Positions 6,051 through 60,085 are shown, counted from the stretch's first letter. The stretch is 64,000 bases of DNA from Raja brachyura (GCA_963514005.1 OY740797.1:24986001-25050000); one strand, 5' to 3'. The notes: generated from the sequence alone by a model not told the origin. A program made the numbers and translations.

Positions 6051-6374
6051 CGTGTACAACAATCCTCGTGCCATTGCCTTTGGAACTGCTTCCTTTCCCG
6101 TCTCTCACACTGCAATAATAGATCCCGGAGTCACGGAAGCCCACGTCTAACATATGTAATTCGGCAAATCCCTTCGGGACATTGTTCATTATCATCCTCC
6201 TGTTTGGGGTGGGAGCCAAAGTCTCTTCTTGGCCCTCTTTCTTCCAGTATACACCCAGCAGTGCTTTCTGACCGAAGTTTGGGAAAGCACAGTATAAGGA
6301 TACATTTTCACCTTTCACCTTCGTTACCTTATCGGGAATCTGACGCACACTGAACGAGAAGGGCCGGTCAGTTA
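6051..6374 (-). CDS. Gene A: Ig V-set (VJ-type) exon, NKp30/NCR3-like receptor
   Basis: Acceptor ttctgacAG, donor G|GTGAGT, 324 nt, phase 1-1. Canonical Cys (SLYC), Trp (VYW), DSGIYYC and J-like KGNGTRIVV. Confidence 0.9.
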
Positions 6375-6570
6375 CTGTCAGAATTTAAAAAAACACACGT
6401 TAAACTTGTGAAATGACAATGAACCGATTGATAAAAATCCAAATGGCTGAAATAGATCGACCGAAAAGTCAGCGTACAGTAGGGTAGAAGTTTGAAAGTT
6501 GTACATCTTATACTTTTCACGGATTGACTTTTTCCCTGTTTTTTCATTTAATAGAGAGAAATATATTAAC

Positions 6571-6625
6571 CTGTGTAACTCATGTGTAGGATCAAGAGAC
6601 ACAGCAGCACGGCAAACATAAACAT
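6571..6625 (-). CDS. Gene A: signal peptide exon (MFMFAVLLCLLILHMSYT)
   Basis: ATG at 6625, hydrophobic 18 aa plus 1 nt, donor G|GTTAAT. Phase matches the V exon and the 55-nt length matches the leaders of genes B and C. Confidence 0.85.
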
Positions 6626-7214
6626 TCTGAACAAATGCAGTGACATTCAACGATGTTTGCTCTCTGACAGCGAGTCAAGCAGTGAAGCTCGTTGGCGACC
6701 GTCTTGCAGCAATACCGCGTGGCCCGAATGGTCCTGTTTCACTTTGACGTCATAGCGCTGAGAAGCACACTTAATGTCACGGAGGACACAGACGTTGCAG
6801 ATTTTGTCTAGAGAATATGGCATATTTTGTGTATCATGGAAAGTTCTGATTTGATGCAGCGTCGCGAATGTCACAACCCCGATTAACATTTACAGGTGCT
6901 TTACATGATATGCCCAATGAAAAGTAGAATATCAAAGTAACGCAACCAGAAATACATAAATATAATTCGTGCAATGTGTCGAAAGATATGTCTCGCCAGT
7001 CAAATCTAAGCGCTTAACAAATACTGCAGCGGTTAGAATGGGAGAAGAAAACCAACGTTTAGAACAAATAAGCATATACTGTACATTATCTCAGCCTTGG
7101 GGAAAAAGACAAATAATGCTTATGGATATGTCGGTGAATAAAGGACGGGCGCAGAGGATAGGCGAAAATAAATACTTTCAAAACCTAAATGGTACTAAAG
7201 AGTTAAGAATTTAG

Positions 7215-7500
7215 AGAATATAGAAACAGTCCCATCGGAGCATCGAATCCACGCCAACCATCGATCACCCCTTGACACCAGTTCCATGTTATCCCACTTT
7301 CTCACCCACTACCTGCACGTTAAGGGCAATTTACAGCAGTCAACAAAGCAGCAAGTCTTTGGAATGTAGGAAGAAATCAGAGCACACGTAGAAAACCCAC
7401 GTGGTTACAAGGTGAACTTGCAAATTCCACACAGACAGCACCGAAGGGCGTTAGGATCGAACGAGGATCTGAGGCAGCATTTCGACCAGTTACCACCATT
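7215..7500 (-). mobile_element. V-SINE copy (diverged)
   Basis: Same head/V-domain/tail order as the 625-923 copy. Confidence 0.65.
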
Positions 7501-7776
7501 GAAGAGATGTATGCGCCCAAGCATTGATGAATTCCAATCAGCTGGTCTTCTATATTCACAGATTTGTAGAATTTTTAAATATATATACTGGATATTATCC
7601 TCCGAGGTTCTATAGATTCAGTAATGATTCCTGGATAGTTCTGAGTAGCAAATGTGAAACTTCCCTTTGGTTTCCAATGTTTCTTGGTTGGGATTGGGGG
7701 GGGGGGGGGGGATTTGGGGAACCAATGTTTCAATCACTTACCTCGACGGCGATGCGATTTGCTCCGTGTCGCATAT

Positions 7777-7807
<31 letters not shown>

Positions 7808-12570: not shown

Positions 12571-13878
12571 TAGGGTCTAATTAGGAACAGTCAACATGGA
12601 TTTATGCCTGGAAGGTCATGTTTGACAAATCTTCTTGATTTTTTTGAAGAGGTTACTAGGGAAATTGACGAGGGTAAAGCAGTGGATGTTGTCTATATGG
12701 ACTTCAGTAAGGCCTTTGACAAGGTTCCTCATGGAAGGTTGGTTAAGAAGGTTCAACTGTTGGGTATAAATGCAGGAATAGCAAGATGGATTCAACAGTG
12801 GCTGAATGGGAGAAGCCAGAGAGTAATGGTGGATGGCTGTTTGTCAGGTTGGAGGCAGGTGACTAGTGGGGTGCCTCAGGGATCTGTGTTGGGTCCTTTG
12901 TTGTTTGTCATGTACATCAATGATCTGGATGAAGGGGTGGTAAATTGGATTAGTAAGTATGCAGATGATACCAAGATAGGGGGTGTTGTGGATAATGAAG
13001 AGGATTTCCAAAGTCTACAGAGTGATTTAGGCCAGTTGGAAAAATGGGCTGAAAGATGGCAGATGGAGTTTAATGCTGATAAATGTGAGGTGCTACACCT
13101 TGGCAGGACAAATCAAAATAGGACGTACATGGTAAACGGTAGGGAATTGAAGAATACAGTTGAACAGAGGGATCTGGGAATAACCGTGCATAGTTCCTTG
13201 AAGGTGGAATCTCATATAGATAGGGTGGTAAAGAAAGCTTTTGGTATGCTAGCCTTTATAAATCAGAGCATTGAGTATAGAAGCTGGGATGTAATGTTAA
13301 AATTGTACAAGGCGTTGGTGAGACCAAATCTGGAGTATGGTGTGCAGTTTTGGTCACCCAATTATAGGAAGGATGTCAACAAAATAGAGAGGGTACAGAG
13401 GAGATTTACTAGAATGTTGCCTGGGTTTCAACAGCTAAGTTACAGAGATAGGTTAAATAAGTTAGGTCTTTATTCTCTGGAGCGCAGAAGGTTAAGGGGG
13501 GACTTGATAGAGGTCTTTAAAATGATGAGAGGGATAGACAGAGTTAATGTGGACAAGCTTTTCCCTTTGAGAATAGGGAAGATTCAAACACGAGGACATG
13601 ACTTTAGAATTAAGGGACAGAGGTTTAGGGGTAACATGAGGGGGAACTTCTTTACTCAGAGAGTGGTAACGGTGTGGAATGAGCTTCCAGTGGAAGTGGT
13701 GGCGGCAGGTTCGTTGGTAACATTTAAAAATAAATTGGATAGGCATATGGATGAGAAGGGTATGGAGGGTTATGGTATGAGTGCAGGCAGGTGGGACTAA
13801 GGGAAAAAAGTTGTTCGGCACGGACTTGAAGGGCCGAGATGGCCTGTTTCCGTGCTGTAATTGTTATATCGTTATACC
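12571..13878 (+). mobile_element. Young 5'-truncated CR1 LINE with an uninterrupted 398-aa RT/C-terminal ORF
   Basis: ORF 12604-13800 has [30 protein letters not shown] and YADD; 3' UTR followed by a GTTATAT tail. Confidence 0.95.
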
Positions 13879-19040: not shown

Positions 19041-19075
19041 GAAGATTAGTTTAGTCATGTCATTTATGTTGACCT

Positions 19076-19375
19076 TTATTCTGGACGGATGGGGCAAAGC
19101 GACATCCGATGCTGCTCAGAAGACGCCGCGCAACAAAATAAACGTTACACGCCTATTTCCCTTCCTCTTCGATCTTAATCAACCCAACATAACGGTGCAC
19201 TGTCAAAGAGACGGAAATAAGAACTTCCTGAGAAGAGATAGCAGAACATTCCGGGTAAGGGGCGCAACGGTTGTTGCTGCATGTGAGCGTGCTGACAGTA
19301 GGTTTACTTCCACATTCCACAAACTTGCGGGTTAAACTTTTTTAAATGAAACCGGTGACGAACCTATCATATACT
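19076..19375 (+). pseudogene. Decayed Ig V exon paralogous to gene B V
   Basis: GKATSDAAQK..INVT..NITVHCQRDGNKNFLRRDSR..KLAG*TFLNETGDEPIIY|GTGAG aligns with gene B V. Acceptor AG, both Cys and the Trp are lost; TAA at 19333. Confidence 0.8.
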
Positions 19376-20930: not shown

Positions 20931-22575
20931 AGATCGGAGAGGTAAAATAAAATAACGAGAACGAGACGGAGCCTGTCCGTAATGCAATAAATAGAGTTCG
21001 TTAGAGTGAAGTTTGCTTTATTGTCATTCAAATCGCTCGAGATGGTGAGTCCAGGCTCTGCCTCATGAGCCTCGAGGTCGGTTCCAGTTGGAGGCCGCCA
21101 GCTCCGCGATTAGGTCTCAACGCAGACGGAGACGGAGAGGGAGATACGACAAGAAAAGGTCGCATCCTCCCGAAGGAAGAGGCTATAACAAGGGTCCCCC
21201 ACCCCGCACACATACACAACTAAAAATAAATTAAGACATAGTCCAACAAGACAAAATAAAACAACAAAAAAGAAAAGACAGACGGCGTGCCGCAGCTGCA
21301 TGGCAGCGCCGCCACTTCCGGAATAACATTGAAGCAGAGAGCAAGATATTCTTCACATAGATAACAAGGAAGAGAGTAACTAAATTAAAAACTTTACCCC
21401 ATAACGAATGTGTGTATTATATTATTATTGGGGGAAAATGTGACAAGGATTATAAATAATTGCTTAGTATCTGGTTTTCACGGTAGAGGAAACTAGGAAC
21501 ATCAAACAATAATAACTAAAGGGAAGCTATGGCGATAAAACGTTATCGGTGGTTTAACTACGAACCAATCGGGTGACTGTAGATGTGGCGGGTTCTATTT
21601 TGTACTGAAATAAAACTCCACCGATTTTGAATAGATCTGGGAAAACTGTAAATGTCATGACACTGTAAAGACAAGAGGGGCACAAATAGGAGGAAACTAT
21701 TGGCAAGTTATTCTGTCAACTGCTATTGGGAAAGTGTTCAAATCCATTACAGATTAAAGACTAGCGGGACAATGTGTGTTTATGAAAAACACACATATTT
21801 GTATTCATTTTCTAGCATAATTTCACGATGAAGGGAGCAATGTGAATAAAAGGGAACTCTGAGAACCTGCATATGGATATCCTGAAGCACTGTGTAGTAT
21901 TCCCTATAAAAGATATGTGATCAAGACAGGAACACGCGAACGAGTTATCGATATAATTTATAAGGAAATGGATGCTATGGTTGTTAATTATCTGAAAAGG
22001 GCAATGGAATGGATGGATGATTGCCAGATTGACAAACAGTGAATGACGGAATGCCACAGCAAGGTACCCAAGGATAACTACTTAAATCTATAGTTATGTC
22101 GTGATGGACTATATCAAACAAGAGGTGATCATATTGAAACATATAAATCCTCCGGGTTGGGGGCGGGCGGTTGGATTGCGGGAACGTACTTTTTAGTTAG
22201 GGTTTCTAGAACGAAATGTAAGGAAACCAAAGGATGGAACACCATCTAAACAGAAAAGATAAGTATTTGGGTGGGCGTTACTGAATGTATACAAGGCAAA
22301 ATCTGAAGAAATATATGAGATTTGAGGGTCGTTAAAGGGGAAAAGAACAGAAAAACGGCATTTGAAACCAAGATTGGTTCATTCATGGCCTTATCTCTGG
22401 GGGGGGGGGGGGGGGGCAGGGGGGCAATTTTCTAATTTGGCATCTTATTTTAACTGGATCCCCTCACGAGGACGAAAATCACGAAATGATCGATGTGCGC
22501 ACTGTTTGAGGTCCTAAAATAAAACAGCCTTCTATTTCCTGGCTCAATTTCCGCCTTCAGGCGCTCAACCAGCAC

Positions 22576-22585
22576 TATATTAAAA
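22576..22585 (+). promoter_or_regulatory. Possible TATA element of gene B
   Basis: TATATTAAAA about 130 bp upstream of the ATG; a CATATAAAG element sits similarly upstream of the pseudo-leader. Confidence 0.3.
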
Positions 22586-22707
22586 GCAACGCATTTCTCG
22601 GTCATGTTATGGGGTGACCGATGTGATTAGCAGTCAGTGTAGAAGATACCGTGACGATTATTAACCAGACTTTCATCTTTCCCAGCCAGGCCTGCTTCGT
22701 CGTCGAT

Positions 22708-22762
22708 ATGTTCCTGAAAGTGTCACCTTGGACGATGTATTTCCTTGGAATTTTGATTGCGG
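22708..22762 (+). CDS. Gene B exon 1: signal peptide (MFLKVSPWTMYFLGILIA)
   Basis: ATG 22708, 55 nt, donor G|GTACAC, phase 1. Confidence 0.8.
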
Positions 22763-23055
22763 GTACACTACGGCTTCTATTGCTTTTTATTTATGGGTCT
22801 TCAAATTACGCAGATATTATAGTTGTACCTTGCAATGTCATGCCGAATTGTCCGTAAAGTCATTGCTGTTGTATGAGTTCTAGAAAGGAGTGCAATTTAC
22901 GAAACCTTGGCGCGGACACAAAAAGCGGGCATAATACTTCGGTTCAATTATTTGTAAATATTTGGTCTGCGTGCAATAAGGTTTTTGCCAGCAGTGTTAA
23001 ATTTCCATTGCTGTATATCAATGGCTAAACTGGATTGTGCACCATCTATTGACAG

Positions 23056-23367
23056 CTGCTGAGAACAGGTCGGGCAAGACGATATCGAATGTTTTACAGA
23101 AGCCGGTGGTCAGTGGCATAAACTTTACCTGTCGGTGTTCCTTCCCCTTCACTGTAAACGTGTCAAACCTAACGGTTTTCTGGTGGAAAGATGGAAATAG
23201 AGGCTTCCTGAAAGAAGATAGCAGGAAAATCTTCTTGATAAGGGCAGGAGGCGCCTACCTTCACCTGCTGAATGTCACGGTCTCGGACGCCGGAACATAC
23301 TATTGTCTTGCAAAACAAGCGGGCCGAACGGTTGCGGATGGAACAGGAGAACAACTGATCGTATATG
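23056..23367 (+). CDS. Gene B exon 2: Ig V-set (VJ-type) domain
   Basis: ttgacAG acceptor, G|GTGAG donor, 312 nt. TCRC, VFWWKDG, DAGTYYC and J-like DGTGEQLIV. Confidence 0.92.
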
Positions 23368-24131
23368 GTGAGCGTACGGTACTTTAGTTGTAGCTCGAAT
23401 TTGAATTTTGCTTCACAAACGTCTTTAATCCAGAATACAAATGTGCAAAACGTTGGGAAATTATTCTAGATTGATTCGATTTAAAATATAGGTCAGAGGG
23501 CATGACAGCAATGATATTTGAGTTGATGTATATTGAAGGTAGTGAGTATAAGATGAATACATACAACGGTTTCAATTTGACACTGAACGCCGAGGCGGGG
23601 ATCCTCCTGAATGAATGAATGAATAGCCTTTATTGTCTCCTGATGTTTTCCTAATGATAATGTTATCAACATATAATTCTGTGAATTGAAAGAGCGGGGT
23701 TTTTACTTCCACAAAATAATTGAAATATAAAGTATATTTCTTGCGCCGAATTAGAGAATCAAGAAATTTTAGTCAAAGCATTCTCTGTAAGCCAGTCCAA
23801 GTCTGCAACTGTTTATGACTGATTATATTGGGAAGTTGAAATATTCACAACAGTACCGCGCCTTTGAAAAGTCGAAACTTGAAAGTTGATTCGCGCGTTT
23901 TAGCACAAGAGACAAGTGTGCAAATTAGTGGTCTTTTCGCAAATTAAATGTCAAGGGAATGCATGTCAAGGGAAGGTGGGGGGGGGGGGGGGGGGGGTCA
24001 ATCGCGATGAAGAACTCCTTTATCTGGGCTCCCGATTTAAAATTTATGATTAAATTAAGTAGCGTTGGAAAAAATGCTATTGGATGATGTAATCGACCTT
24101 TCCCCTTTTAATTATATTCCTCTTTACTTAG

Positions 24132-24437
24132 CTGTCCCTTCTCCTCTGAAGATTGTGGCTGTTCGGTCTAGAAATGCTGGGACTCATTTCCTGAAAATCC
24201 AGTGCAGAACGGCTGCCTTTTACCCGAAAGAATTTAATCTCACCTGGCATAGAAATGGCTCTGTCATCCAATCTGGATTTCGGCATGAACAACATTCAAC
24301 GGCAGACGGATTGTATGAAGTTATCAGCTCTTTGGATGAGAAACGGGCAGTCAAAGAAGGAACCATTTACACATGTAAAATTATTCACCGTTCTATGCTA
24401 ACTCCAGCAACTGCCAACTACACGGTTCCTCATGAAG
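24132..24437 (+). CDS. Gene B exon 3: Ig C1-set domain
   Basis: ttacttAG acceptor, G|GTAAC donor, 306 nt. C1 motifs IQC..AFYP....LTW, DGLY and YTCKIIH. Confidence 0.92.
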
Positions 24438-25196
24438 GTAACGTGTCCTACGCATAGAATAATGGATAATCCACTGAATAATAATATTAATAGTAAAAAT
24501 AAAATATAAGGATTTTTAAACGACCGTATTTTCTGCTGCAAATGTATTTTCCTAGAACTTGTGCAATGTTCCTATTTTCTGCCAGCGTAGACGGACGCTG
24601 TACAATCCACCCAGTCTATGTTGCCTCCCAGAAGAATTCCATCAATACAGTTCCCGCAATAGATCGCGCACCTGAAACCTATTCCATTTCACGTCATCTG
24701 TAAGTCCACTCTGATGCCCCCACAAACATCACCCCTTCCCGAGGAATAATGTAAAAATAATCAATTCACTCACTAAGCAGTTCCTTGGTAAAATCTCAGA
24801 GAATGTGCAATGTCCATGCAGACAGTCCCCGAAGCCAGGCCTGAGCTCGGATACCTGGAGATGTGAATCGATAGCACTATTGCTGTACCATTAACTCGGT
24901 GAATTTTTTTATTTTTGTTCGTTTATGGCTGAAATGGGTAATCAATTGCAACTCAGACACAGAAACTACCTAAAAATAATCCGCGCAAATACCGAAATAT
25001 GAAGTACTACTACTCCAATTTGTCCGTGGTCTCACTCTGATGCCACGGATGCCCAGAACAGAAAGGTCAGTGTGCGAATAGGAAAGGGATAAAGGGATTC
25101 TAAATAGTTAGCAACCGGGAAATCCAATAAGCCTTGGAAGACCTCGTACAAGTTTTCAGCGTGACGGGGGGGGGGGGGGGGGGGGGTTCACGTCCA

Positions 25197-26840: not shown

Positions 26841-27244
26841 AGCATTTTCAGTTTATTTCTGAGAACTAACTTGTTGGCTCTTGCATCAATTGGGGACTGT
26901 TAGTGGGGAGAAGACGTCTGTAATGATTCACTCCTGGCCAGCGTCAGTACCATTTATATCTCCTTCAAGATTTGGTGAACAGAATATATCCAAATTAATG
27001 TATTATGTTCCACAATGTTCTGTTTCCCAACGGTCAATATCCCACAAGGTTCAATTAAGATCTATTTATTTCACTCGTAATCGCGCCATAAATTGAAATT
27101 GTTGGCTCTTTGCCGCATTCCACGCGGTTCTGGTGAAATCTGTTGAGTGAACATTTGAAATATCTTGCTTTGTTTTCCGCAAAGTCTACTTTGAAATAAC
27201 TGAATTAAATATAAACATTTGGTCATCGGTTTACCCTCCCACAG

Positions 27245-27346
27245 CTGTCGAGGGTTTATCAGCTTCTCTAATCGCTGGAAGTATCCGAGGTGCAGTGTTA
27301 ATTTTAATGTTCATCGTTATCGTCGTGATGACAATTATATATAGAG
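27245..27346 (+). CDS. Gene B exon 4: transmembrane (AVEGLSASLIAGSIRGAVLILMFIVIVVMTIIYR)
   Basis: ccctccacAG acceptor, G|GTATGT donor, 102 nt, phase 1-1, long hydrophobic stretch containing one Arg. Confidence 0.88.
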
Positions 27347-27669
27347 GTATGTTTCTCATCCATTTTTTAAGTATCATCCCAGTATAATATTATAATATAA
27401 TAGTATTGATAATTACATGATTATCTTGATAATAAAGGAAATGAAACATTTGCACGGGCAAAAATTATGATTATAATAAACAGCACCGACTTAACGAAGA
27501 TATTCAATTTTGCATGTGACTAATGTTTGATTATCACATATTTTGAATTCTATGTTTTAATTCGACACATTATCACATAGCAGCCAGCATTTAATTGTAC
27601 CTATTGGTCAAGATCTGAACATCTGTGAATGTTGTGATAAATGTTGTTTCATTGGTTGATTGATACAGC

Positions 27670-30034: not shown

Positions 30035-30150
30035 AAAGAAGATGAGAACGTTAGCCGCAATTCGATGCACGCCCATTGGGATCTTGTCCGCAGCAAAGAA
30101 TAAGGGAAACCTGAAGAGCACGTTGAGAGCCCTGCGTATGCAAAGCTAAA
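30035..30150 (+). other. Gene B candidate cytoplasmic exon with an in-frame stop
   Basis: cttacAG acceptor, AA|GTACGT donor. Phase-0 reading is KEDENVSRNSMHAHWDLVRSKE*GKPEEHVESPAYAKL (TAA at 30101). Confidence 0.45.
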
Positions 30151-30257
30151 GTACGTTTCACGCTTTTACTCCACACATCTGAGAATACAGATAGGTCTTA
30201 CTCGGAGAAATGTGTCGTTTTCTTGTCCAATTAACAATAGCAAACATTTGTGCACAG

Positions 30258-30389
30258 AACGCAATTATGGCTGCTGCTGATAACGAACTGACATACGCTT
30301 CCTTGAACACGTCAAGCTCCAAAAATAAATTGAAACGGCAACACGAAGAAATAAGTGTAATATATAGCGGGGTGAAATATAACAACTAA
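30258..30389 (+). CDS. Gene B terminal exon with tandem ITIMs (LTYASL, VIYSGV)
   Basis: Reads NAIMAAADNELTYASLNTSSSKNKLKRQHEEISVIYSGVKYNN*. In frame from exon 5 via the AG at 30256-57, or from the TM exon via the AG at 30239-40. Confidence 0.75.
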   Translation, partial: NAIMAAADNELTYASLNTSSSKNKLKRQHEEISVIYSGVKYNN

Positions 30390-36759: not shown

Positions 36760-39700
36760 AGGGAGGGAGGGGGAGACGGGAGGGGAGAGAGGGAGAGCGA
36801 GAGGAGGGGGAAAGGGGAGAGAGGGCGGAGAGAGAGGAGGGGGAGAGAGAGAGGGGGAGAGAGCGGGGAGGGGAGGCGGAGGCAAGAGTGTAGCGGGGAG
36901 AGGAGAGGAGGTGGGGGGAGAGGATGGGGAGAGAGAAGAGGCGAGAGATGAGGGGAGAGAGAGGAGGGGGTGAGAGCGGGGAGGGGAGGCGGAGGCAAGA
37001 GTGTAGCGGGGAGAGGAGAGGAGGTGGGGGAGAGGATGGGGAGAGAGAAGAGGCGAGAGATGAGGGGAGAGAGAGGAGGGGGAGTGGGGGAAAAGAGAGG
37101 GGGCAAAGGGAAGGGGTAGGGAGTGGGGAGGGGGTTGGAGGAGGGCAGAGGGGGTTGGAGCGGAAAGAGGGTTGGAGGAGGGGAGAGGTGGGGTTGGAGG
37201 AGGGGAGAAGGAGGGTGGAGGAGGGGAGATGGGTGGGGCTGAGAGGGGAGAGGGAGGGAGGAGGAGAGGGGGAGATGGAGAGGGGGCGGAGTGGGGAGGG
37301 GAAGGGGAGGGGGACAGGGGAGAAGGGAGAAAGGGGGTGGGGAGGGGGAGGGGGAGCGGGAAGGGGGAGGGGGAGAGGGGAGGGAGGACGGAGGAGGAGA
37401 TGGGGAGAGGGTGAGGAGAGGGGAGATGGAGAGGGGGGAGAGAGGAGGGGAGAGGGGTGAGGAGAGGTGTGAGGAGAGAGGGGGAGGAGAGAGGGGGAGG
37501 AGAGAGGGGGAGGAGAGGGGGGAGAGGGGGGAGGACGGATGGAGATGGGGGAGAGATTGAGTAGGGGAGGAGATGGGGAAGGGAAAGAACGGGGAGGGGG
37601 GACGGGGAGAGAGGGGTAGGGGTGGAAAAGGTTGGGGGATGTGAGAGTGGAGGGGGAGAGATTGGAGGGGGAGAGAGAGGAGGGGGAGAGAGAAGGGGAG
37701 AGGGGTGGGAGGTGGAGAGAGATTGGAGGGGAGAGAAGAGGGAGAGAGTGGTGTGGGAGAGTGGAGGGGAGAGAGAAGGGGGAGATGGAGAAGGGGAGAG
37801 GGGTGAGGGGAGAGGTGTGAGGAGAGAGGGGAGGAGAGGGGAGAGATGGGGAGGATGACGGGTGAAGATTGGGGAGAGATTTGGGAGTGGAGGAGAATGG
37901 GAAGAAAGAGAGCGGTGGATTGGGAGAGGGGAGAGCGGGGAGGGGGGAAGGGGAGAGAGGGGTAGGGGTGGGAGAGGTAGGGGAGGGGATGTGAGAGTGG
38001 TGGGGGAGGGCTGGAGGGAGCGGCTGGGGAAGGGGAGGGAGGGATAGGAGGGAGGGAGAGGGGGGGAGGGAGAGATGGGTGGGGGTGGAAGGGGAAAGAG
38101 GGATGGGGAGAGTGGGGGAGGGAGGAGGAGGGGGAGGGAGGAGGAGGGGGAGGGAGTAGTGGAGGGAGAGAGGGAGGAGATGGGGAGAGTGGAGGGGGAG
38201 AGTGCAAGGGGAGCGAGAAAAGGGGGAGAGGGGGGTAGAGAAGGGAGAGCGAGAGAACGGGGTGGGGAGAGGCAGGGGGTGGAAGGAGGGGAGGGAGGGG
38301 GGAAAAGAGATTGGAGGGGAGAAAGAGATTAGAGGGAAAGATAGAGTAGAGGGGAGAGAGAGATTAGAGGGGAGAGAGGGAGTAGAGGGGAGAGAGAGAG
38401 TAGAGGGGGATGGAGGGGGCGAGAGAGGACAGGGTGAGGGAGGGGCGGGAGGAGGGGGTGAGAGTTGGAGGGGGGAGAGAAAAGGGTGGGGAGAGGTGGA
38501 GGGGGAGAGGTGGACGGGGGAGAAGAGGAGGGGGAGAGGTGGAGGGGAGGAGGGGAGGGTGGAGATGGGGAGGAGAGGGGAGGGTGGAGAGGGGAGGAAA
38601 ATAAGAGGTGGAGGGGGAGTGGAGGGGGGTAGAGGGGAGGGGGCAGAGTGGGGGAGAGGGAGGGAGAGAGGAGGGAGGAGAGAGGGTGGTAAAGGTGGGG
38701 GGGAGGGGGGAGGTGGAGAGAGATTGGAGGGTGAAAGGAGAAGGGGAGTGGAGGGGAGAGAGAAGAGGGGAGAGNNNNNNNNNNNNNNNNNNNNNNNNNN
38801 NNNNNNNNNNNNNNNNNNNNNNNNNNNNNNNNNNNNNNNNNNNNNNNNNNNNNNNNNNNNNNNNNNNNNNNNNNNNNNNNNNNNNNNNNNNNNNNNNNNN
38901 NNNNNNNNNNNNNNNNNNNNNNNNNNNNNNGAGAGACGGTGGGAAAGAAGTGGGGAGAGAAGGGGGAGAGAGAAGGGGAGAGCGGGAAAGGCATGGGGCA
39001 TAAGGGAGGGGGAGGGGGAGGAGGAGAGTAGAGGGGAGAGAGTAGTGGAGAGAGAGAGTAGAGGGGAGAGAGTGGAGAGGAGAGAGAGAGAGAGTAGAGT
39101 GGAGAGAGAGAGAGAGAGAGTGTAGAGGGGAGAGGGGGAGAGGGGGAGGGATGGGGAGAGAGGAGGGGGTGAGAGCGGGGAGGGGAGGCGGAGGCAAGAG
39201 TGTAGCGGGGAGAGGAGAGGAGGTGGGGGGAGAGGATGGGGAGAGAGAAGAGGCGAGAGATGAGGGGAGAGAGAGGAGGGGGAGTGGGGGAAAAGAGAGG
39301 GGGGCAAAGGGAAGGGGTAGGGAGTGGGGAGGGGGTTGGAGGAGGGCAGAGGGGGTTGGAGCGGAAAGAGGGTTGGAGGAGGGGAGAGGTGGGGTTGGAG
39401 GAGGGGAGAAGGAGGGTGGAGGAGGGGAGATGGCTGGGGCTGAGAGGGGAGAGGGAGGGAGGAGGAGAGGGGGAGATGGAGAGGGGGCGGAGTGGGGAGG
39501 GGAAGGGGAGGGGGAGATGGGAGAAGGGAGAAAGGGGGTGGGGAGGGGGAGGGGGGGCGGGAAGGCAGAGGGGGAGTAGAGGGCAGGGAGGACGGAGGAG
39601 GATATGGGGAGAGGGTGAGGAGAGGGGAGATGGAGAGGGGGGAGAGAGGAGGGGAGAGGGGTGAGGAGAGGTGTGAGGAGAGAGGGGGAGGAGAGAGGGG

Positions 39701-41480
39701 AGGAGAGGGGGGAGAGGGGGGAGGACGGGGGGAGAACGGATGGAGATGGGGGAGAGATTGAGTAGGGGAGGAGATGGGGAAGGGAAAGAACGGGGAGGGG
39801 GGACGGCGAGAGAGGGGTAGGGGTTGGAAAGGTTGGGGGGATGTGAGAGTGGAGGGGGAGAGATTGGAGGGGGAGAGAGAGGAGGGGGAGAGAGAAGGGG
39901 AGAGGGTGGGAGGTGGAGAGAGATTGGAGGGGAGAGGAGAGGGAGAGAGTGGTGTGTGAGAGTGGAGGGGAGAGAGAAGGGGGAGATGGAGAAGGGGAGA
40001 GGGGTGAGGAGAGAGGTGTGAGGAGAGAGGGGAGGAGAGGGGGGAGATGGGGAGGATGACGGGTGAAGATTGGGGAGAGATTTGGGAGTGGAGGAGAATG
40101 GGAAGAAAGAGAGCGGTGGATTGGGTGAGGGGAGAGCGGGGAGGGGGGAAGGGGAGAGAGGGGTAGGGGTGGGGGAGGTAGGGGAGGGGATGTGAGAGTG
40201 GTGGGGAGGGCTGGAGGGAGCGGCTGGGGAAGGGGAGGGAGGGATAGGAGGGAGGGAGAGGGGGGAGGGAGAGATGGGTGGGGGTGGAAGGGGAAAGAGG
40301 GATGGGGAGAGTGGGGGAGGGAGGAGGAGGGGGAGGGAGGAGGAGGGGGAGGGAGTTGTGGAGGGAGAGAGGGAGGAGATGGGGAGAGTGGAGGGGGAGA
40401 GTGCAAGGGGAGCGAGAAAAGGGGGAGAGGGGGGTAGAGAAGGGAGAGCGAGAGAACGGGGTGGGGAGAGGCAGGGGGTGGAAGGAGGGGAGGGAGGGGG
40501 GAAAAGAGATTGGAGGGGAGAAAGAGATTAGAGGGAAAGATAGAGTAGAGGGGAGAGAGAGATTAGAGGGGAGAGAGGGAGTAGAGGGGAGAGAGAGAGT
40601 AGAGGGGGATGGAGGGGGCGAGAGAGGACGGTGAGGGAGGGGCGGGAGGAGGGGGTGAGAGTTGGAGGGGGGAGAGAAAAGGGTGGGGAGAGGTGGAGGG
40701 GGAGAGGTGGACGGGAGAGAAGAGGAGGGGGAGAGGTGGAGGGGAGGAGGGGAGGGTGGAGATGGGGAGGAGAGGGGAGGGTGGAGAGGGGGAGGAAAAT
40801 AAGAGGTGGAGGGGGAGTGGAGGGGGGTAGAGAGGAGGGGGCAGAGTGGGGGAGGGGGAGGGAGAGAGGAGGGAAGAGAGTGTGGTAGAGGTGGGGGGGA
40901 GGGGGGAGGTGGAGAGAGATTGGAGGGTGAAAGGAGAAGGGGAGTGGAGGGGAGAGAAGAGGGGAGAGAGGAGGAAGAGAGAGGAGGGAGAGAGAGGAGG
41001 GAGAGAGAGGAGGGGGAGAGAGGAGGGGGAGAGAGAGGGGGAGAGAGAGGGGGAGAGAGAGAGGGAGAGAGAAGGGGGAGAGAGACGGTGGGAAAGAAGT
41101 GGGGGGAGAGAGAAGGGGGAGAGCGGGAAAGGCAGGGGGCATAAGGGAGGGGGAGGAGGAGAGTAGAGGGGAGAGAGTAGTGGAGAGAGAGAGTAGAGGG
41201 GAGAGAGTGGAGAGGAGAGAGAGAGAGTAGAGTGGAGAGAGAGAGAGTGTAGAGGGGAGAGGGGGAGAGTGGGAGGGATGGGGAGAGAGGAGGGGGTGAG
41301 TGAGGGAGGGGGGGTGAGAGGGGAAGGAGAGAGAAGAGGGGGAGTTGGAGGGTGAGAGAAGAGGAAGGGGAGAAGTGGAAGGGGGAGAAGAGGAGGGGGT
41401 GGAGAAGAGGGGAGGGTGGATGCTAGAAGGGATGGAGGGGCAGGGGGAGTGGAGGGAGGTGGAGAGGGAGGGGTAAATAG
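36760..41480 (+). repeat. G/A-rich polypurine low-complexity tract with ~2.2-kb internal duplication
   Basis: Almost entirely G/A on the + strand; marker motifs recur at an offset of about 2200 (e.g. AGTGCAAGGGGAGCGAG at ~38201 and ~40400). Confidence 0.95.
38775..38930. other. Assembly gap (156 N)
   Basis: Run of n characters. Confidence 1.
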
Positions 41481-41846
41481 GGAGGGGTGGTAGGCCAACT
41501 TGCTCTATTTGATCTTGCTTGCACGCCAGACCACGTGAAGGTTCCAATCTCCCACACCTGTCCCATTGTGATGGCATATGTAAATGAGATCCATTGTGAT
41601 TAGACATCTGTCAGATGGCTCTGACTCGTGCAGCTGTTTGATTTTAGTAGGCCCACCTGAAGGTTCCAATCTTCCAGCCCTGCCCCATTGTGATGTCATA
41701 TCATAGGTAAATTAGATCCATTGTGATTGGACGTCTGTGAGATGGCGCTGTGACACATGCAGCAGTTTGATTTTAATTTTTTTGGATTTTTTAACTAAAA
41801 AGGCAGGGAAATTAATAACCAAATGTTCTAATTTTCAAAACAAAAT

Positions 41847-43300
41847 GTGGAGGAGGAAACACTCCACAGGAATATGGTGACACCTGGCCCATCAAACTCC
41901 AATATGCCTCTCCCCCGGGTGACTGTAGCAGAGGTTAGATCGGCCTTCCTGATGGTAAACTCACAAAAGTCAACTGGACCAGATGGAGTTCCTGGCAGTG
42001 TCCTTAGTAGCTGCGCGGACCAGCTAGCAGAGTATCCTACTCCGTTCAGAAGTACCCACGTGCTTCCAAAAGACCACTTTCATCCCATTGCCGCAGAAAA
42101 ACAAGATCTCATGCCGAAACGACAACCAGTGGCCTTCACGTCCGAAATCATGAAATGTTTTGAGAGGCTAGATATGGAACGCATTAAATCCAATCCACCC
42201 AGTGACTTTGACCCACTGGAGTTCGTCTACTGCCACAACAACTGCATGGATGATGCCGTCACCCTAGCCCTACACACATTCCTAGAACACCTGAAGAGGA
42301 GAGACACCTACTTCAGACTCCTATTCATAGATTACAGCTCTGCCTTTAATACCACCCCAGTTCATCACCAAACTCGCAGGACTTGGGGTCAGCACTCATC
42401 TCTGCAACTGGATCCTCGACTTCCTGACCAACAGACACCAATATGTAAGGATAGGGGACAAATCATCCTTTGTGATAATCCTCAACACTGGTGCTCCACA
42501 AGGATGCGTTCTCAGCTCTCTTCTTTACACCTTGTACAGCCACGACTGGGCAGCCATGTACAAATCTAATTCAAGTGTCAAATTCCCAGATGACACCACC
42601 ATTGAGAGCCGGATATCAAATAATGATGAGACAGAGTGCAGTAAGGAGATTGAGAACTTCGTGTCATGGTGTCGAGACAATAAGCTTTCTCTCAACGTCA
42701 GCAAGGTAGTGATCGACTTCAGGAAGCAAAGTGGTACACATACCCCAGTTTGCATTGATGGTGCTGAAGTAGAGAAGGTCGAAAACTTTGAATTTCACGG
42801 AGTCAATATCACCAATAACTTCTACTGGGCCCCTCATATTGAAGCAACGACCAAGAAAGTACACCAACGCTTCTGCTTCCGTAGAAAGCTTAGGAAGTTT
42901 GGCATGTTCCCTACATCTCTCACCAACTTTTACAGATGCACCATAGAAAGCATTTTTTCAGGATGCATCACAGCGTGGTTTGGGAACAGCTCCATGCCGG
43001 ACCATAAGAAATTGCAGTGAATTGTGGATGCAGCTCAGGCCATCACACAATCCAACCATTCTATTGCATCAATTTATACTTAACGCTGCCTTAGCAAGGC
43101 CTGCAGCATGATCAAGGACGAGTCGCACCCTGGCCACTCCCTCTTCTACCCTCTCCCATGAGAAAAATGTGTGAAAACGCACACCACCAGAGTCATGGCG
43201 AGTTTCTTCCCAGCTGTTATCATGCAACTGAATCATCCAATCACAACCAGAGAGCAATGCTGAACTACCTACCTCTGATGTCCCTTGGACTATCCTTGAC
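41847..43300 (+). mobile_element. Rex1/Babar-like LINE RT fragment (frameshifted)
   Basis: LFIDYSSAFNT, NTGAPQGCVLS, KFPDDTT and FYRCTIESI motifs. Confidence 0.85.
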
Positions 43301-53131: not shown

Positions 53132-56063
53132 TATTTTATTGTCATTACACATAAGTGCAACGAGATTTGGTTTGCAACTTCGAGATTTCGGTTTGCAACC
53201 CCGAGAACAAGGTTTGTAAAAACGAACATTTGACCAGTAACATCAACACAGACTAAAGTGCGAGGCCGGGGGAGGCAGTCCATGGGGGTGTGGGGTCCTC
53301 AGCAGGACCGGTTCAGAGCCGCTATAGCTCTGGGAATGAAGCTGTTCCTGAGTCTGGTAGTTCGAACAGTCCATTACAAGGGTGAGAGGAGTCTTTATGT
53401 ATGCTGACGGCCTTCCTGAGGCAACGTTTGTGGTAGATGCCCTCCAAGGCTGGTAGCTTAGTCCCAATAATCTGTTACGCTCTGTGGACAACGCGCTGAA
53501 GAGCTCTGCTCTCCGCCTCCGTGCAGCTGAGATACCACACAGAGATGCCATACGTTAGTATGCTCTCTGTGGTGCAGCGGTAGAAGGTCGTCAGCAGCTG
53601 TTGGGGCAGACCAGTCCGTTTTTATGTTCTTAGGAAGAACAGTCATTGCTGTGCCTTTTTGACCAGTGCAGCGGTGTTGGTGGACCATGTAGGGCATCTG
53701 AGATGTGAGTGCCCAGAAACTTGAAGCTGGACACTCTCTGCACACTGTGTCCGTAGATGGAGATTGGGGCATATTCCCCATTCTGTGACCTCCTGAAGTC
53801 GATAATCAGCTCCTTGGTCTTGGAGGTGTTTAGAGACAAGTTGTTCCGTGAGCACCAGTCCGCCAGGTTCTGCACCTCCGCTCTATAGTTTGTTTCATCA
53901 CCGTTGGTGATCAGCCCGATCACCGTTGTGTCGTCTGCAAACTTGACAATGTTGTCAAATGCAGGGACACAGTCGTGGGTGAAGAGGGAGTAGAGTATGG
54001 GGCTCCGTACACAGCCCTGTGGTGTACCGGTGCTCAGGGTGATAGTGCAGGACAGGTGAGGCACCAGTCTCACTGCCTGTGGTCGCTCCGTCAGAAAATT
54101 CAGGATCCAATCACATATCAGTGAGCTGAGGACTAGCTGGTGGAGTTTGGTGGTGAGCTTGGTGGGGATGACCGTATTGAAGGCAGAGCTATAGTCAATG
54201 AAGAGCATCCTCACGTAGGTGCCCTGTTTTTCCAGGTGGGTCAGGACAGTGTGAAGAGCCACAGAGATGGCATCCTCTGTGGATCTATTTGCCCTGTATG
54301 CAAATGGATGAGAGTCCAATGATGCAGGGATGCTGGATTTGATGTGGGAGAGGACCAGCCTTTCAAAGCACTTCATTGGTATTGGAGTTAGGGCAACCGG
54401 GCGGTAGTCATTCAGGTTGGTGACTTTAGACTTTTTCGGCACCGGCACTATGGTAGCTGTCTTCAGGCACTTAGGGACCGTTGCCAGAGATAGAGACAGG
54501 TTGAAGATACTCGTAAATACCTCCGCCAGCTGTACAGCACAGTCCTTTAGTACCCTACCCTGGACTCCATCTGGGCCTGCAACCTTGCGTGGATTGATCC
54601 TACGCAGAGCGCACTGCAGCTCGTGGGTGCTCAGTGTTAAGGCCTGTCCCTCTGCCCTAGTCGGGGTTGTTCCTCTCCTGGTGGTGTTGCCAGTTTCAAA
54701 GCGGGCAAAGAATGTGTTTAATTCATTGACCAGTGTGATATCACTGTGGGGGCAGACGGGGCTGCTCTTGTAGTCAGTGATGTCGCTGACACCCTGCCAC
54801 ATGCTTCTGGTGTCCGCGGTGTTGAAGTGGTCTTCCACCCTTTGCCTGTGGATGTCTTTCACCTTTTTTATGCCTTTGTCCAGGTTTGACCTGGCAGCAC
54901 TGTAGACAGAAGTGTCCCTGGATTTAAAGGCAATTTTGCGTGCCCTTACCAGATTCTGAACGTCCTTGTTCATCCACGGTTTGCGGTTTGGGAACACGTT
55001 TATATCCTTGTCCACTGTGACAAACTCCACACAGCAGTTGATGTAGGAGAGCACAGTGGATGTGTACTCCTCCCAGTCTGCCTCTAGTAGCCTGTTGTGC
55101 AAACAGGGCCCAGTCGGTGCGATCAAAGCAGTCCTGGAGTTGTAGGGTGGCGTCCTCGGGCCATATTTTGACCGTCTTTACTCCCGAGGCAGCTACAACG
55201 GCCTACATTTAAGCAGCAGGTATTCCAGGTCTGGGGAACAGTAGCTCTCTACTGCAGTGTGGTTGGTGCACCAGTCCTTGTTGATATAGATGCAGAGCCC
55301 TCCGCCCTTGCTCTTACCAGAGTCCTTTGTTCTATCAGCACGATGCAGCGACCGATTGGTTAGGTCCACAGCCCCGTCGGGAACCAGCGCGCTGTGCCAG
55401 GTCTCTGTGAAGATCAGCACACGGCAGTCTTTCAGGGATCGCTGGGTGTTGATCCAGAGCCTCGCCTCATCCAGCTTGTTGGTAAGTGACCGGGCATTCG
55501 CGAGAAAGACACTTGGTAGTGATGGTCTTTGCGGGGCCCTCCGTAGCCTGTCCTGCACCCACGCTCGCCTTCCACGTTTCTGCTTCCTCTCCCGGCGCAT
55601 TCTCCGTATCCAACCCTCCGGGGTGGTGATCCAGGAGGCTGTTCTGCCAACCTCCATCGGGATTTTGGTGAGGGTACTGTAGTACTCACCAGCCAGTTTC
55701 TCGCAGCCACGTCAAATGTTGAGCAGTTCCATTCGGCTGCACGTGCGACCTGCCGGGATCACAGTGCAGGTACCGGATATCCCCGTCCTGGAGGTGAGTC
55801 CCTTAATGTGTTTTCGGGGGATACTGGGATTTCTAGGGATTCTAGGGGTTCGGAGGTGTTTACGTACCTTATTTCCACAGCAGCGTTCGGTACCGGGCTG
55901 CTCCGAATTGACTCGGACTGGGGAGCGCAAAGCCGCCGTGTCTGATTTTCCCGTCCTGGAGGTGAGTCCCTTACGGTGTTTTCGGGCGGTACTGGGAATT
56001 CTAGCGGGGTACTGGGGTATCTAGGGGTTGACTGGGACTGAGGAGCGCAAAGCCGCTGCGTCT
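53056..56063 (-). mobile_element. Rex1/Babar-like LINE (endonuclease start + RT, internally deleted) with (ATT)25 tail
   Basis: LANARSL, FTETW and GGGLCIYIN; 498-aa RT ORF with LFIDYSSAFNT, TGTPQGC and KFADDTT; AAT microsatellite at 53056-53130. Confidence 0.9.
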
Positions 56064-59000
56064 GATTGGAGGGTAGCTAATATTATCCCACTTTTTAAGA
56101 AAGGCAGGAGAGAGAAAACAGGGAACTATTGACCAGTTAGCCTGATAGGGAAGTGGTGGGGAGGTTAGGTGGTGGGGAAGATGCTGGAGTCAATTATAAA
56201 AGATGAAATAGCCGCATATTTGGATAGCAGTGACAGGATCGGCCAGCATGGATTTACGAAGGGGAAATCAGGCTTGACTAATCTTCTGGAATTTTTTGAA
56301 GATGTAACTAGGAAAATGGACAAGGGAGAGCCAGTGGAAGTAGTTTACCTGGACTTTCAGAAAGCATTTGATAAGGTCCCACATAGGAGATTAGTGGGCA
56401 AAATTAGGGCACATGGTATCGGGGTAGAGTGCTGACATGGATAGAAAATTGATTGGCAGACAGGAAACAAAGAGTAGGGATTAACGGGTCCCTTTCAGAA
56501 TGGCAGGCAGTAACTAGTGGGGTACCGCAAGGCTCGGTGCTGGGACCGCAGCTATTTACAATATGCATCAATGATTTGGATGAAAGGATTCAAAGTAACA
56601 TTAGCAAATTTGCAGATGGCACAAAGCTAGGTGGTAATTTGAACTGGGAGGAGGATGTTATGAGAATGCAGGGTGACTTGGACAGGTTGGGAGAGTGGGC
56701 ATATGCATGGCAGATGAAGTTTAATGTGGATAAATGTGAGGTTATCCACTTTGGTATCAAAAACAGGAAGGCATATTACTATCTAAATGGCGTCAAGTTG
56801 GGAAAAGGGGAAGTACAACGGGATCTGGGTGTCCTTGATCATCAGTCTGTGAAAGTAAGCATGCGGGTACAGCAGGCAGTGAAGAAAGCGAATCTCACGT
56901 TGGCCTTTATTACAAGAGGAGTTGAGTATAGGAGAAAATAGGTTCTTCTGCAGTCGTACAGGGCCCCAGTGAGACCACACCTGGAGTATTGTGTGCAGTT
57001 TTGGTCCACTAATTTGTGGAAGGACATTCTTGCTATTGAGGGAATGCAGCGTAGGTTTACAAGGTTAAATCCCGGGATGGCGGGACTGTCATATGCTGAG
57101 AGAATGGACCGCCTGGGCTTGTACGCGCTGGAGTTTAGAAGTATGAGAGGGGATCTTATTGAAACATATAAGATTGTTAAGGGTTTGGACACGCTAGAGG
57201 CATGTCCATGTTCCCGATGTTGGGGGAGTCCAGAACCAGGGTCCACAGTTTAAGAACAAGCGGTAAGCCATTTAGAACGGAGACGAGGAAACACTTATTC
57301 TCACAGAGAGGGGTGAGTCTGCGGAATTCTCTGCCTCAGAGGGCGTTGGAGGCAGGTTATCTGGATGCCTCAGGAGAGAGGTAAATAGGGCTCTTAAAGT
57401 TGGCGGATATGGGGAGAATGCAGGAACGATGTACTGCTTGGGGATAATCAGCCATGATCACATTGAAGGGCGGCGTTGGCTCGAAGGGCCGAATGGCCTA
57501 CTCCTGTACCTAAGGTCTATTGTCTATTGAAATGATTACCTTCTTCGTGAATCCAAGGTCTGCTGAATCACATTCACCTAAATAGATCCGTTTTATACCA
57601 TTTATACCATAGGAGGAACAATTAATTTCCCCAACATGCAGAGACTGAATGTTGTTTCCATGTTAAGCAGCGACTTTTTTTGTACTTCATCCGGTTTGAC
57701 ATTACAATTCGGTGTTCACAAATCATTCTCCTCTGCATTGGAGAAAATAAACTAGATTCTTTGATGGCTTTTCAGAGAGACCCTGAGTACCCGGTTGCGT
57801 CCCTCTCCCACTGACTATTCTGTTTACCCATCCAAATGCAAGTGAAACTGTTATAAGCACGCCCAATCATTTAAGCATATTGCAGACCGCTTCAACTTAA
57901 GTAATTGAGACTTTATTTCCGCGTGTATCATAAATGCCCATTTCTACCTCTCATCACAGTATCTCTCTTTTCACTCTCTTTTGGTATGGCATAGCCTGCA
58001 GAGTACGTCTCATTATTCATTATTAGCAACATGCTTCATAGACAAAGACCCATAACTGATGCTAACCGCAACCTTCAAGACGGGTTTATTCAGAGTTGTT
58101 TCCCTTTGTTCTATGTACTAGTCCTCCAACTTATCCGCCATCGATGGAAACACTCTTTCCTAGTTCAATGAAAGTTGTGGGACGTAAAACGTTATCTGGT
58201 TCAGTTTCCGCCGAATCGGCCATGGCGAGAAGCAAATGCTGCTTTATATTTTTTTAAAAGACACATTGTGCTAGAGTAAAGTGCAACGTGCACATCTTCT
58301 AACCTCGTCAACTGCAACCGGTGTTCCTACTGTACTTCGGCGGGACAGGGCATAGAATCGAGGACCGTTTAGCAAATATCGCGGCACTCTTCTGAACAGC
58401 AAATGTCAGATGTTATATCAAAAAGGGACTTGTGGTGCAGTTTTAGCAACAACGAAGAAGCGACCGAGGCGCTTGCGTTTAAGGTTAAAATGATGGGGCA
58501 TATTTGGAAATAGGGTATTCGTAGACGAGCATGTGGCAGTCACTGGGTAATAATTACAACACATAGGAACATTTAATATGTAATGGATGGGAGAGAAGGA
58601 GAGGCACGTTTATTTCAAACACGATGGAAAGGCAAACACAATTACAATGACAACGCCCAGAAGACATTTCGACAGGTATACAGAAAGGAAAAATAGAGAG
58701 TGATACGGGACTCGCAAGCAAATGAGTTTAGCGAAGACATGAATCACAACTGTTGTGGCTGGCACAGCTACACCAAGGCTTGTTGCACTGTTATACGATT
58801 CTGCGATTCTCTGATAGGACGGTTCTATAACCAGCTATAGTTTCTCGGCATTTTCGGGTTTTTTTGCTAATAGTTCCTTTAATTTTACCGCTAACGTGTC
58901 AAGAATAGGACATAGTACTTTGGAGAAGGGTTGGTGGCGTCCCAAGATGGATCTATCTTATATACTAAATACGTCTTGTGACGTTGGTGGCACATTCCAA

Positions 59001-59544
59001 ACAATTAATGGCCGACATTAATATTCAAAGCTTTCCTTTTCGCATTAAACGTCATTTTCTATCTGGCTACTAGTATTTTCGGATGGCCGACTTCTTTCAG
59101 TTTCGACATATGTGGAAGACTTTTAATTTTCTGTTCTGATATAAAACTGCAGCCACTAGCATGGAGATCATTAGTAAACTCAGCAAAGACAAGATTCGTC
59201 TGGATGGATGGAAAATATGTGTATGCATCACGGAACATGACATGCACTTCCATCAGATTGTTTCCAGAATTTATCCCGAAGCTCATTTCTGATCAGCTGA
59301 AATTGGGTCATTTCGTATCGGACGTCATTTCCTTCAGCCCACGTCAAATCGCGTACCATTTCTTTCATGCAGAGACATGGTAATGCATTGTGCAACATGT
59401 TCCATTTGACCAAGTCTTTCGAACAGAAAGGTTAACTCTATTTCTCTTTATCCAGATCATACTTTACTTACATGCTGCTTTCAGCAATTCCTGAGTGAAT
59501 TTCCGATTTCCAATATCTAGGACGTATGATTTTCATGGTTCAGT

Positions 59545-59599
59545 ATGCCTCTTCGCGATGTGGTTCTGTTGTTATCGTCGCTCTTGATTATAAATGCAG
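59545..59599 (+). CDS. Gene C exon 1: signal peptide (MPLRDVVLLLSSLLIINA)
   Basis: ATG 59545, 55 nt, hydrophobic core, donor G|GTATTT, phase 1. Confidence 0.85.
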
Positions 59600-59764
59600 G
59601 TATTTCTCGATTTTTCTTTTGTTTTCATCTTCTTACTGACCTACACCCTCTGTGATCAACACCCTATATTGAACGCACATACACTTTCACGCATCTTTTA
59701 AAAGTACGATTAATTGTCTGTCCTCGTCTGTTATGGGATATTTTTTGATTTTCTTCTGCTACAG

Positions 59765-60085
59765 TGGCCGTTGATGCTCACTACCAAGTCGATCAATCTC
59801 CTTCGAGCCAACACGTGATCTTATATTCAAATACCACTCTCTATTGCATTATTGGACTATCGCAAAATAGTCCACCTGTGGAAATTTATTGGTGGAAACT
59901 TGGCGAACAGAACTTTCTGCAAGCAGCCTCTGACAGTAGGAAGATATTTGTTCGTTTTACACAAGGTGGAGCCTCCTTGCATCTATTGAATATCCATGCA
60001 GATGATGCTGGAGTCTATTACTGTGGAGTGGGAATACAGGGAAACGAGATTGTGAATGGATCTGGCTCCAGAATCAAAGTCTTCG
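59765..60085 (+). CDS. Gene C exon 2: Ig V-set (VJ-type) domain
   Basis: ctgctacAG acceptor, G|GTATGT donor, 321 nt. VDQSP, TLYC, IYWWK, DAGVYYC and J-like NGSGSRIKV. Confidence 0.92.

Follow-up and report, generated by a model that had tools for sequence, protein, structure and literature searches.

Three probable members of the chondrichthyan NCR3 (NKp30-like) family, and a decayed V exon, in a 64,000-nucleotide stretch of the Raja brachyura genome

What kind of receptor is encoded by a group of germline-joined VJ exons in the cartilaginous fish Raja brachyura, and has that kind been described before? We analyzed a stretch of 64,000 nucleotides (nt) of the genome assembly (GCA_963514005.1 OY740797.1:24986001-25050000). 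We refer to this whole stretch as the window and count all positions from its first letter. An earlier note on this DNA had proposed a tandem cluster of non-rearranging VJ(-C1) receptors of the immunoglobulin superfamily (IgSF), possibly uncharacterized. Our results make it quite probable that the window is part of a chondrichthyan NCR3 (NKp30-like) multigene cluster, with three apparently functional genes (genes A, B and C) and one pseudogene V exon resembling that of gene B. These genes are a further example of a described family, and no new kind of receptor. [quoted passage not shown]

We found three intact units and one decayed V exon in the window, as the earlier note had stated. The exon limits of genes A, B and C were read directly from the DNA, using splice sites and reading frame. 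Each intact unit has a leader exon of 55 nt followed by a V exon in phase 1-1 (Table 1). The leaders comprise 18 codons plus one nt, encode a hydrophobic signal peptide and end at a GT donor. The V exons begin at a pyrimidine-rich acceptor and end with a G strand (GxG...V), a single G and a donor. The three G-strand peptides quoted in the earlier note are all present (KGNGTRIVV at 6081-6055 on the minus strand, DGTGEQLIV at 23337-23363 and NGSGSRIKV at 60055-60081), and each runs straight into its splice donor, as claimed. A 55-nt leader had been ascribed to all four copies. This holds for genes A, B and C, the figure for gene A depending on which of two ATG codons is taken as the start, but a search for such a leader for the decayed copy at about 19057-19374 found none. 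The first in-frame ATG of gene A (6644-6646, minus strand) precedes the presumed start by 21 nt and would give a leader of 76 nt. It has a T at -3, a worse Kozak context than that of the second ATG, which has an A at -3 and was taken as the start. The 55-nt leader is favored because orthologues (e.g., P0079 and P0080) have leaders of 18 codons plus one nt.

The V domains of genes A, B and C (V-A, V-B and V-C) are, as had been noted, strongly diverged. Their mutual identity is 28-40%, and the residues that they have in common are C, W, R, LHxL, DxGxYYC and GxG. Pfam identified V-A and V-C as V-set domains (expectation values (E) of 2.9e-11 and 1.2e-8, respectively). V-B matched Ig_3 (E 5.6e-7), and its V-set match was weak. 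The decayed exon is most readily recognized by its likeness to V-B (35% identity in tblastn, E 1.8e-10) and to the Heterodontus protein P0104 (E 4.9e-9).

We scanned both strands of the window for recombination signal sequences (RSS), defined as CAC[AT]GTG, a spacer of 12 or 23 (+/-1) and a nonamer with at most two mismatches. There were no RSS-like sites on either strand, in agreement with the earlier note. A single exon that encodes the entire V domain, J-like GxG strand included, thus lies behind a split leader and without RSS, as expected of a chondrichthyan NCR3 gene. Two other parts of the initial description need changing. The cluster is not strictly tandem: gene A lies on the minus strand, and the decayed V exon and genes B and C lie on the plus strand. 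The VJ(-C1) arrangement applies to gene B, which has C1 and transmembrane (TM) exons downstream of its V exon, but no C1 exon of gene A or C was found inside the window. We searched for downstream exons of these two genes with the exons of gene B, 195 family proteins, the tails of lineage A (defined below) and a hydrophobicity scan. No credible C1, TM or tail exon was present within the window, that is, in 6.0 kb downstream of A and 3.9 kb downstream of C. One hydrophobic open reading frame (ORF; 4277-4333, minus strand) turned up in this search and was rejected as an AT-rich chance ORF.

The relatives of the window V domains identify the family. We built a profile from the three V domains and used it to search 1.84 billion representative proteins. 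The search also brought in many giant multi-Ig proteins, which score by the sum over many domains. Full-length matches with a single V domain came from chondrichthyans only and formed a coherent set of 220-450 amino acids (aa). They were found in Heterodontus, Scyliorhinus, Mustelus, Carcharodon, Cetorhinus, Heptranchias, Chiloscyllium, Hemiscyllium, Rhincodon, Stegostoma, Pristiophorus, Mobula, Hemitrygon, Leucoraja and Callorhinchus. These proteins are built as leader-V(J)-C1-TM-tail, with C1 absent from some isoforms, and orthologues in other species have complete gene models. Within one species the relatives lie on one chromosome-sized record, often under near-consecutive accession numbers. 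The window V domains are 50-59% identical to their own shark and ray lineages, the best matches being a Mobula protein for V-A (53%) and Heterodontus P0104 and P0046 for V-B and V-C (54% and 59%, respectively). A search of a protein-cluster atlas with the V domains returned generic V-set clusters only.

We placed the V domains in a tree (IQ-TREE, 63 V domains). The chondrichthyan family was separated from reptile multi-V proteins with support of 100/100, in a tree whose outgroup sampling is narrow and without tetrapod NCR3, SIRP or PRARP sequences. V-A grouped with a Mobula sequence (98/93) within a lineage of 15 members, lineage A (95/87). V-B grouped with sequences of Heterodontus and Hemiscyllium (100/99), and V-C with sequences of Heterodontus and Mustelus (100/99). 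Judged by this tree, genes A, B and C are each from a different ancient lineage of the chondrichthyan NCR3 family. Every one of the window V domains has orthologues in other elasmobranch orders with which it nests, and the divergence among A, B and C therefore reflects ancient paralogy. The earlier note had spoken of a diversifying family; the divergence belongs to these old lineages, and ongoing diversification is not demonstrated by it.

The nearest matches of the V profile outside the chondrichthyans were turtle and lizard proteins (P0005, P0016, P0019, P0063 and P0068). These have two to six tandem VJ-like V domains and carry the automatic names titin-like, pIgR-like, FCRL5 or NCAM2. In the tree they form a clade (100/100) that is sister to the shark family.

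The assignment to NCR3 comes from named members of the family. The window V domains group with shark and ray sequences named NCR3-like, apart from the reptile multi-V proteins. One of these, P0190 (NCR3-like, Chiloscyllium plagiosum), belongs to lineage A, with 43% identity to V-A. Another, P0209 (NCR3-like isoform X2, Pristis pectinata), was matched with 85 bits (E 7e-19), and its place in the tree is within the family. According to the supplement of Verissimo et al. (2023; PMC10751288), Pristis has three genes called NCR3-like by NCBI beside ddah2, and the white shark has five NCR3 genes between AIF1 and DDAH2, within the major histocompatibility complex (MHC) class III region. The nurse shark has eight NCR3 genes (MT914154-914161; Flajnik et al. 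2025, PMC12227049), and the same authors set NCR3 alongside UrIg as the other VJ gene that is linked to the MHC and does not rearrange. The nurse shark genes were described by Kinlein et al. (2021, Immunogenetics 73:333), as cited in the later literature. The window genes resemble these published genes in having a non-rearranging VJ exon and a split leader, and in belonging to a family of many highly divergent, clustered paralogues restricted to Chondrichthyes, with P0190 and P0209 in the same tree. Our comparison was made through these relatives named NCR3-like. The nurse shark subtypes are, reportedly, highly divergent, differentially expressed and linked to the MHC, and an abstract by Kinlein and colleagues is said to count eight of them. 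The order AIF1 - NCR3 - DDAH2 is a feature of the published genes; the window contains only family genes and fragments of long interspersed nuclear elements (LINEs).

The earlier idea of non-rearranging, germline-joined VJ receptors of the IgSF, of an NKp30 or NK type, in a cartilaginous fish is supported by the anatomy and by the relatives. The suggestion that they might be uncharacterized largely falls away, with the V domains nesting among elasmobranch orthologues inside the described NCR3 family. The homology search and phylogeny that the earlier note had proposed gave a chondrichthyan NCR3-like family (100/100) and no specific affinity of V-B or V-C to NKp30.

Gene B is the one gene of the window for which downstream exons were found (Table 1). 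Its V exon leaves and its C1 exon enters in phase 1, the intron between them is 764 nt, and V and C1 are contiguous in the orthologous proteins. The C1 exon is 48-51% identical to the C1 domains of P0130, P0115 and P0104, and its best matches in the PDB were Ig C domains, SIRP domain 3, UrIg2 and the alpha3 domain of MHC class I. As predicted from these exons, gene B, and gene B only, has a VJ joined directly to a C1-set domain, the VJ-C1 architecture proposed for an antigen-receptor precursor.

The 3' end of gene B has features of both activating and inhibitory receptors. The TM exon encodes an Arg near the outer end of the hydrophobic span. The same position holds Arg in Heterodontus P0115, a protein with a short tail (AGCARGALVV), and Gly in P0104, a paralogue that bears immunoreceptor tyrosine-based inhibitory motifs (ITIMs). 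Downstream is a decayed cytoplasmic exon of 116 nt, similar to residues 278-317 of the P0104 tail (tblastn E 0.004). Spliced straight onto the TM exon, it would reach a stop after three codons (ERR, then stop). A search of gene B for a further small exon, expected after the TM exon and before the 116-nt exon, found none. The last exon encodes two ITIM-type motifs, LTYASL and VIYSGV, with their tyrosines 23 residues apart, and aligns to the C-terminus of P0104 (NLTYLAL...LVYAAVKNSN). These motifs are in frame if the TM exon is joined to the acceptor at 30240; the intervening exon would end the frame.

Gene B can be read either as a predicted ITIM receptor of ~307 aa or as a predicted short-tailed receptor with Arg in the TM segment. 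Its polarity may go either way, because the TM Arg and the stop-bearing exon coexist with an intact ITIM exon that can be reached in frame by skipping. This combination suggests that gene B may be an activating form, or may be becoming one, with an ITIM exon that is still usable.

Two forms occur among the members of the family. One has an uncharged TM segment and a long tail with one to three ITIMs or immunoreceptor tyrosine-based switch motifs (ITSMs), as in LTYASL...TEYAAI. In the other, the TM segment contains Arg or Lys and the tail is 9-33 residues long. Judged by these motifs, the two forms are the signature of paired inhibitory and activating receptors.

From these features and by analogy with known receptors, we infer how the genes might work, including their ligand, cell type, signaling and expression. 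In each gene the exon that follows the split 55-nt leader already encodes the whole V domain, germline-joined and including the J-like G strand; recombination is neither needed nor possible. In gene B the C1-set, TM and cytoplasmic exons that follow would yield a type I membrane receptor, with C1 as the stalk. The V domain would bind a cell-surface ligand, probably one like B7H6, as in the pair NKp30-B7H6. Flajnik and colleagues are said to have reported in 2012 that the copy numbers of NKp30 and B7H6 co-vary. Inhibition, through recruitment of SH2 phosphatases, would be the role of members with an uncharged TM segment and ITIMs or ITSMs. Those with a short tail and Arg or Lys in the TM segment would activate, through association with an adaptor bearing an immunoreceptor tyrosine-based activation motif (ITAM). 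Splicing and expression of genes A, B and C in Raja brachyura are predicted, and their backing is the complete gene models of other species.

How closely are these genes related to mammalian NKp30? Human NKp30 (NCR3; PDB 3NOI, 3PV6 and 6YJP) likewise has a germline-joined V domain of VJ type. V-A aligned to it end to end (residues 13-106, E 2e-4), and this was the best full-length match of V-A to a single-domain protein. In a Foldseek search with the AlphaFold model of V-A (mean predicted local distance difference test score 87.9), NKp30 ranked second and fourth, with 28% identity, the highest among the leading matches. The other leading matches were shark VNARs, CD79b and V domains of Ig light chains, with scores about equal to that of NKp30. 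V-B and V-C differ from V-A in having no specific sequence affinity to NKp30. The evidence for a specific kinship of the window V domains to mammalian NKp30 is therefore weak; what these tests establish is membership in the chondrichthyan NCR3 family.

Several observations count against assigning the window to the NCR3 family. In searches of the PDB with the V profiles, V domains of PD-L1 outscored NKp30 and multi-Ig proteins dominated; NKp30 was not among the best 60 matches of these profiles or of V-C, and V-A was the only V domain to pick it up. The link to the published shark family comes from NCBI names, one supplementary table and the tree. All of the runs that contain the stretch are genomic contigs, four of them, of low coverage, being continuous across the introns where they were aligned to 22500-28499. 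Genes A and C could be truncated, or could extend past the window with their 3' exons outside it. The PDB results would fit a distinct chondrichthyan family of VJ-C1 paired receptors that is PRARP-like or a lineage of its own and not orthologous to NKp30, the label NCR3 then being a convenience of annotation. So would the nearest matches outside the chondrichthyans, which are the reptile multi-V proteins and not NKp30, and the names given automatically by NCBI, which are inconsistent (Ig lambda-like, NCR3LG1-like, SIRP-alpha-like, tapasin-related-like, CD276 and uncharacterized). The V-C1-TM-ITIM architecture is also unlike that of human NKp30, which is a single-copy gene with a V domain, a stalk and a TM segment that contains Arg, as in gene B, and with neither C1 nor ITIM. 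Against a distinct family stand the Foldseek ranking of V-A and its G-strand motif GNGTR[I/L]VV, which we take to resemble that of human NKp30. The NCR3-like protein of Pristis nests within the family. Moreover, in the supplement cited above (PMC10751288), specialists give the name NCR3 to multicopy genes of exactly this kind, which lie in the MHC class III region of shark and sawfish. We consider a distinct family unlikely. It is similarly improbable, in our view, that lineages B and C, perhaps together with all other V-C1-TM members, are no true NKp30 orthologues but a separate chondrichthyan paired-receptor family that has kept the VJ-C1 architecture of an antigen receptor before RAG, with gene B caught midway in a switch from inhibitory to activating. 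If that were so, one gene could send either signal by the choice of exon.

Some or all of the units might instead be unexpressed relics, orphan leader and V exons without working 3' exons. The missing downstream exons of A and C, the clearly dead V exon, the decayed cytoplasmic exon of gene B, the LINE fragments that fill the window and the purely genomic origin of the runs would all agree with this. However, the three V exons have kept open frames, the Cys, Trp, DxGxYYC and GxG residues, splice sites and plausible signal peptides, and the neighboring decayed exon shows by contrast what real decay looks like. Orthologues elsewhere have complete models, and it is nothing unusual in these genomes for an intron to reach tens of kb, an example in the same supplement being LOC127586055, which spans ~42 kb (5183127-5224875; PMC10751288). 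Relics are, in sum, a highly improbable account of the units. Homology to the SIRP family, which has V and C1 domains and pairs ITIM-bearing with charged-TM members, appears scarcely credible. Many relatives are named [quoted passage not shown] by NCBI, the C1 exon of gene B matches domain 3 of SIRP-gamma and SIRP-alpha (E 4e-9 to 5e-8), and paired inhibitory and activating forms occur in the family. But the 60 best PDB matches of V-A, of V-C and of the V profiles included no SIRP V domain, and Ig constant domains match the C1 exon better, so the SIRP match reflects only the C1-set class. Family members also have one C1 domain, whereas SIRPs have two. Membership in the chondrichthyan NCR3 family remains the reading that we prefer.

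The genes of this NCR3 cluster can be set beside other non-rearranging and paired receptors. UrIg and UrIg2, the non-rearranging VJ-C1 genes of sharks (Flajnik et al. 2023, 2025; PMC12227049), also have a split leader and a single-exon VJ followed by C1-type domains, and the C domain of UrIg2 was among the PDB matches of the gene B C1 exon (E 2.3e-8). In contrast, UrIg2 of the nurse shark has nine C1-type domains, and neither ITIM tails nor paired forms are reported for UrIg or UrIg2 (PMC12227049). Flajnik et al. place NCR3 outside UrIg and the V group of Ig and T cell receptors (PMC12227049). SIRP, KIR, LILR and the NITRs of teleosts resemble the present family in combining ITIM-bearing members with short-tailed, charged-TM members in one rapidly evolving cluster. 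They differ in domain count, and their V domains have no specific sequence affinity to those of the window; the likeness is one of working and not of kinship. SIRP and NITR V domains also have a J-like strand.

The window leaves the picture drawn by Flajnik, Ohta and colleagues unchanged. It adds to that picture three members assigned to lineages, a pseudogene, and one gene that combines activating with inhibitory features. It also shows how public automatic annotation spreads the family over at least six names that have nothing to do with one another, which should help in curation and in comparisons among paired receptors.

Table 1. Exons of the family genes and other features of the window.
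Feature	Position	Strand	Description
Gene A leader exon	6571..6625	-	55 coding nt, counted from the ATG at 6625; product MFMFAVLLCLLILHMSYT plus 1 nt; donor GTTAAT at 6570
Gene A V(J) exon	6051..6374	-	324 nt, phase 1-1; acceptor ...tgacag; ends ...KGNGTRIVVH, then G and donor GTGAGT
Decayed B-like V exon (pseudogene)	about 19057..19374	+	In-frame stop; both canonical Cys and the Trp lost
Gene B leader exon	22708..22762	+	55 nt; encodes MFLKVSPWTMYFLGILIA plus 1 nt; donor GTACAC at 22763
Gene B V(J) exon	23056..23367	+	312 nt, phase 1-1; ends ...DGTGEQLIVY, then G and donor GTGAGC
Gene B C1-set exon	24132..24437	+	306 nt, phase 1-1 (...YTCKIIHRS...); Pfam C1-set E 1.2e-9, 38.8 bits, cut-off 21
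Gene B connecting and TM exon	27245..27346	+	102 nt, phase 1-1 (...SLIAGSIRGAVLILMFIVIVVMTIIYR)
Gene B decayed cytoplasmic exon	30035..30150	+	116 nt; good acceptor and donor; TAA at 30101-30103 in the homologous frame
Gene B last exon	30241..30389	+	Acceptor AG at 30239-30240, phase 1; encodes ...NELTYASL...ISVIYSGVKYNN, then stop
Gene C leader exon	59545..59599	+	55 nt; encodes MPLRDVVLLLSSLLIINA plus 1 nt; donor GTATTT at 59600
Gene C V(J) exon	59765..60085	+	321 nt, phase 1-1; ends ...NGSGSRIKVF, then G and donor GTATGT
GA-rich simple-repeat array	36761..41487		Intergenic, in no gene; contains the assembly gap 38775-38930 (run of N)
LINE-type ORFs	12574-13797, 41832-43017, 56453-56938	+	Pfam RVT_1, Exo_endo_phos
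LINE-type ORFs	31515-34542, 53633-55177, 61654-63694	-	Pfam RVT_1, Exo_endo_phos

A gap in the assembly bears on the linkage of the three genes. It lies in the GA-rich array, and neither a family exon nor a meaningful ORF was found across 38775-38930. The left flank of the gap (36803-38774, 1.97 kb) is 95.5% identical to the right flank (39011-40968), so the gap probably marks a repeat unit of ~2.2 kb whose copy number the assembly leaves open. Gene A, the decayed V exon and gene B lie to the left of the gap and gene C to the right; the linkage of gene C and the distance between B and C therefore depend on this join. In Heterodontus, the proteins XP_067905013 (B-like) and XP_067905015 (C-like) mirror the order of B and C in the window, which is suggestive only.

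A second sequence, ~92% identical to the window across gene B's leader intron and V exon (22788-23367), was present in genomic runs of organisms A, B and C (labels of organisms, not of genes). Of the 12 variants listed for it in the V exon, 9 are non-synonymous; the variants are concentrated at 23285-23351, in the F-G part of the domain, which resembles the third complementarity-determining region (CDR3). The second sequence is either a very divergent allele of gene B or a recent paralogue located elsewhere.

Apart from the family genes, the window consists of LINE fragments. ORFs of LINE-type retrotransposons occupy most of the intergenic and intronic space, on both strands. The public Heterodontus model XP_067905015 (P0046) also has a reverse-transcriptase fragment of the LINE kind fused at its N-terminus.

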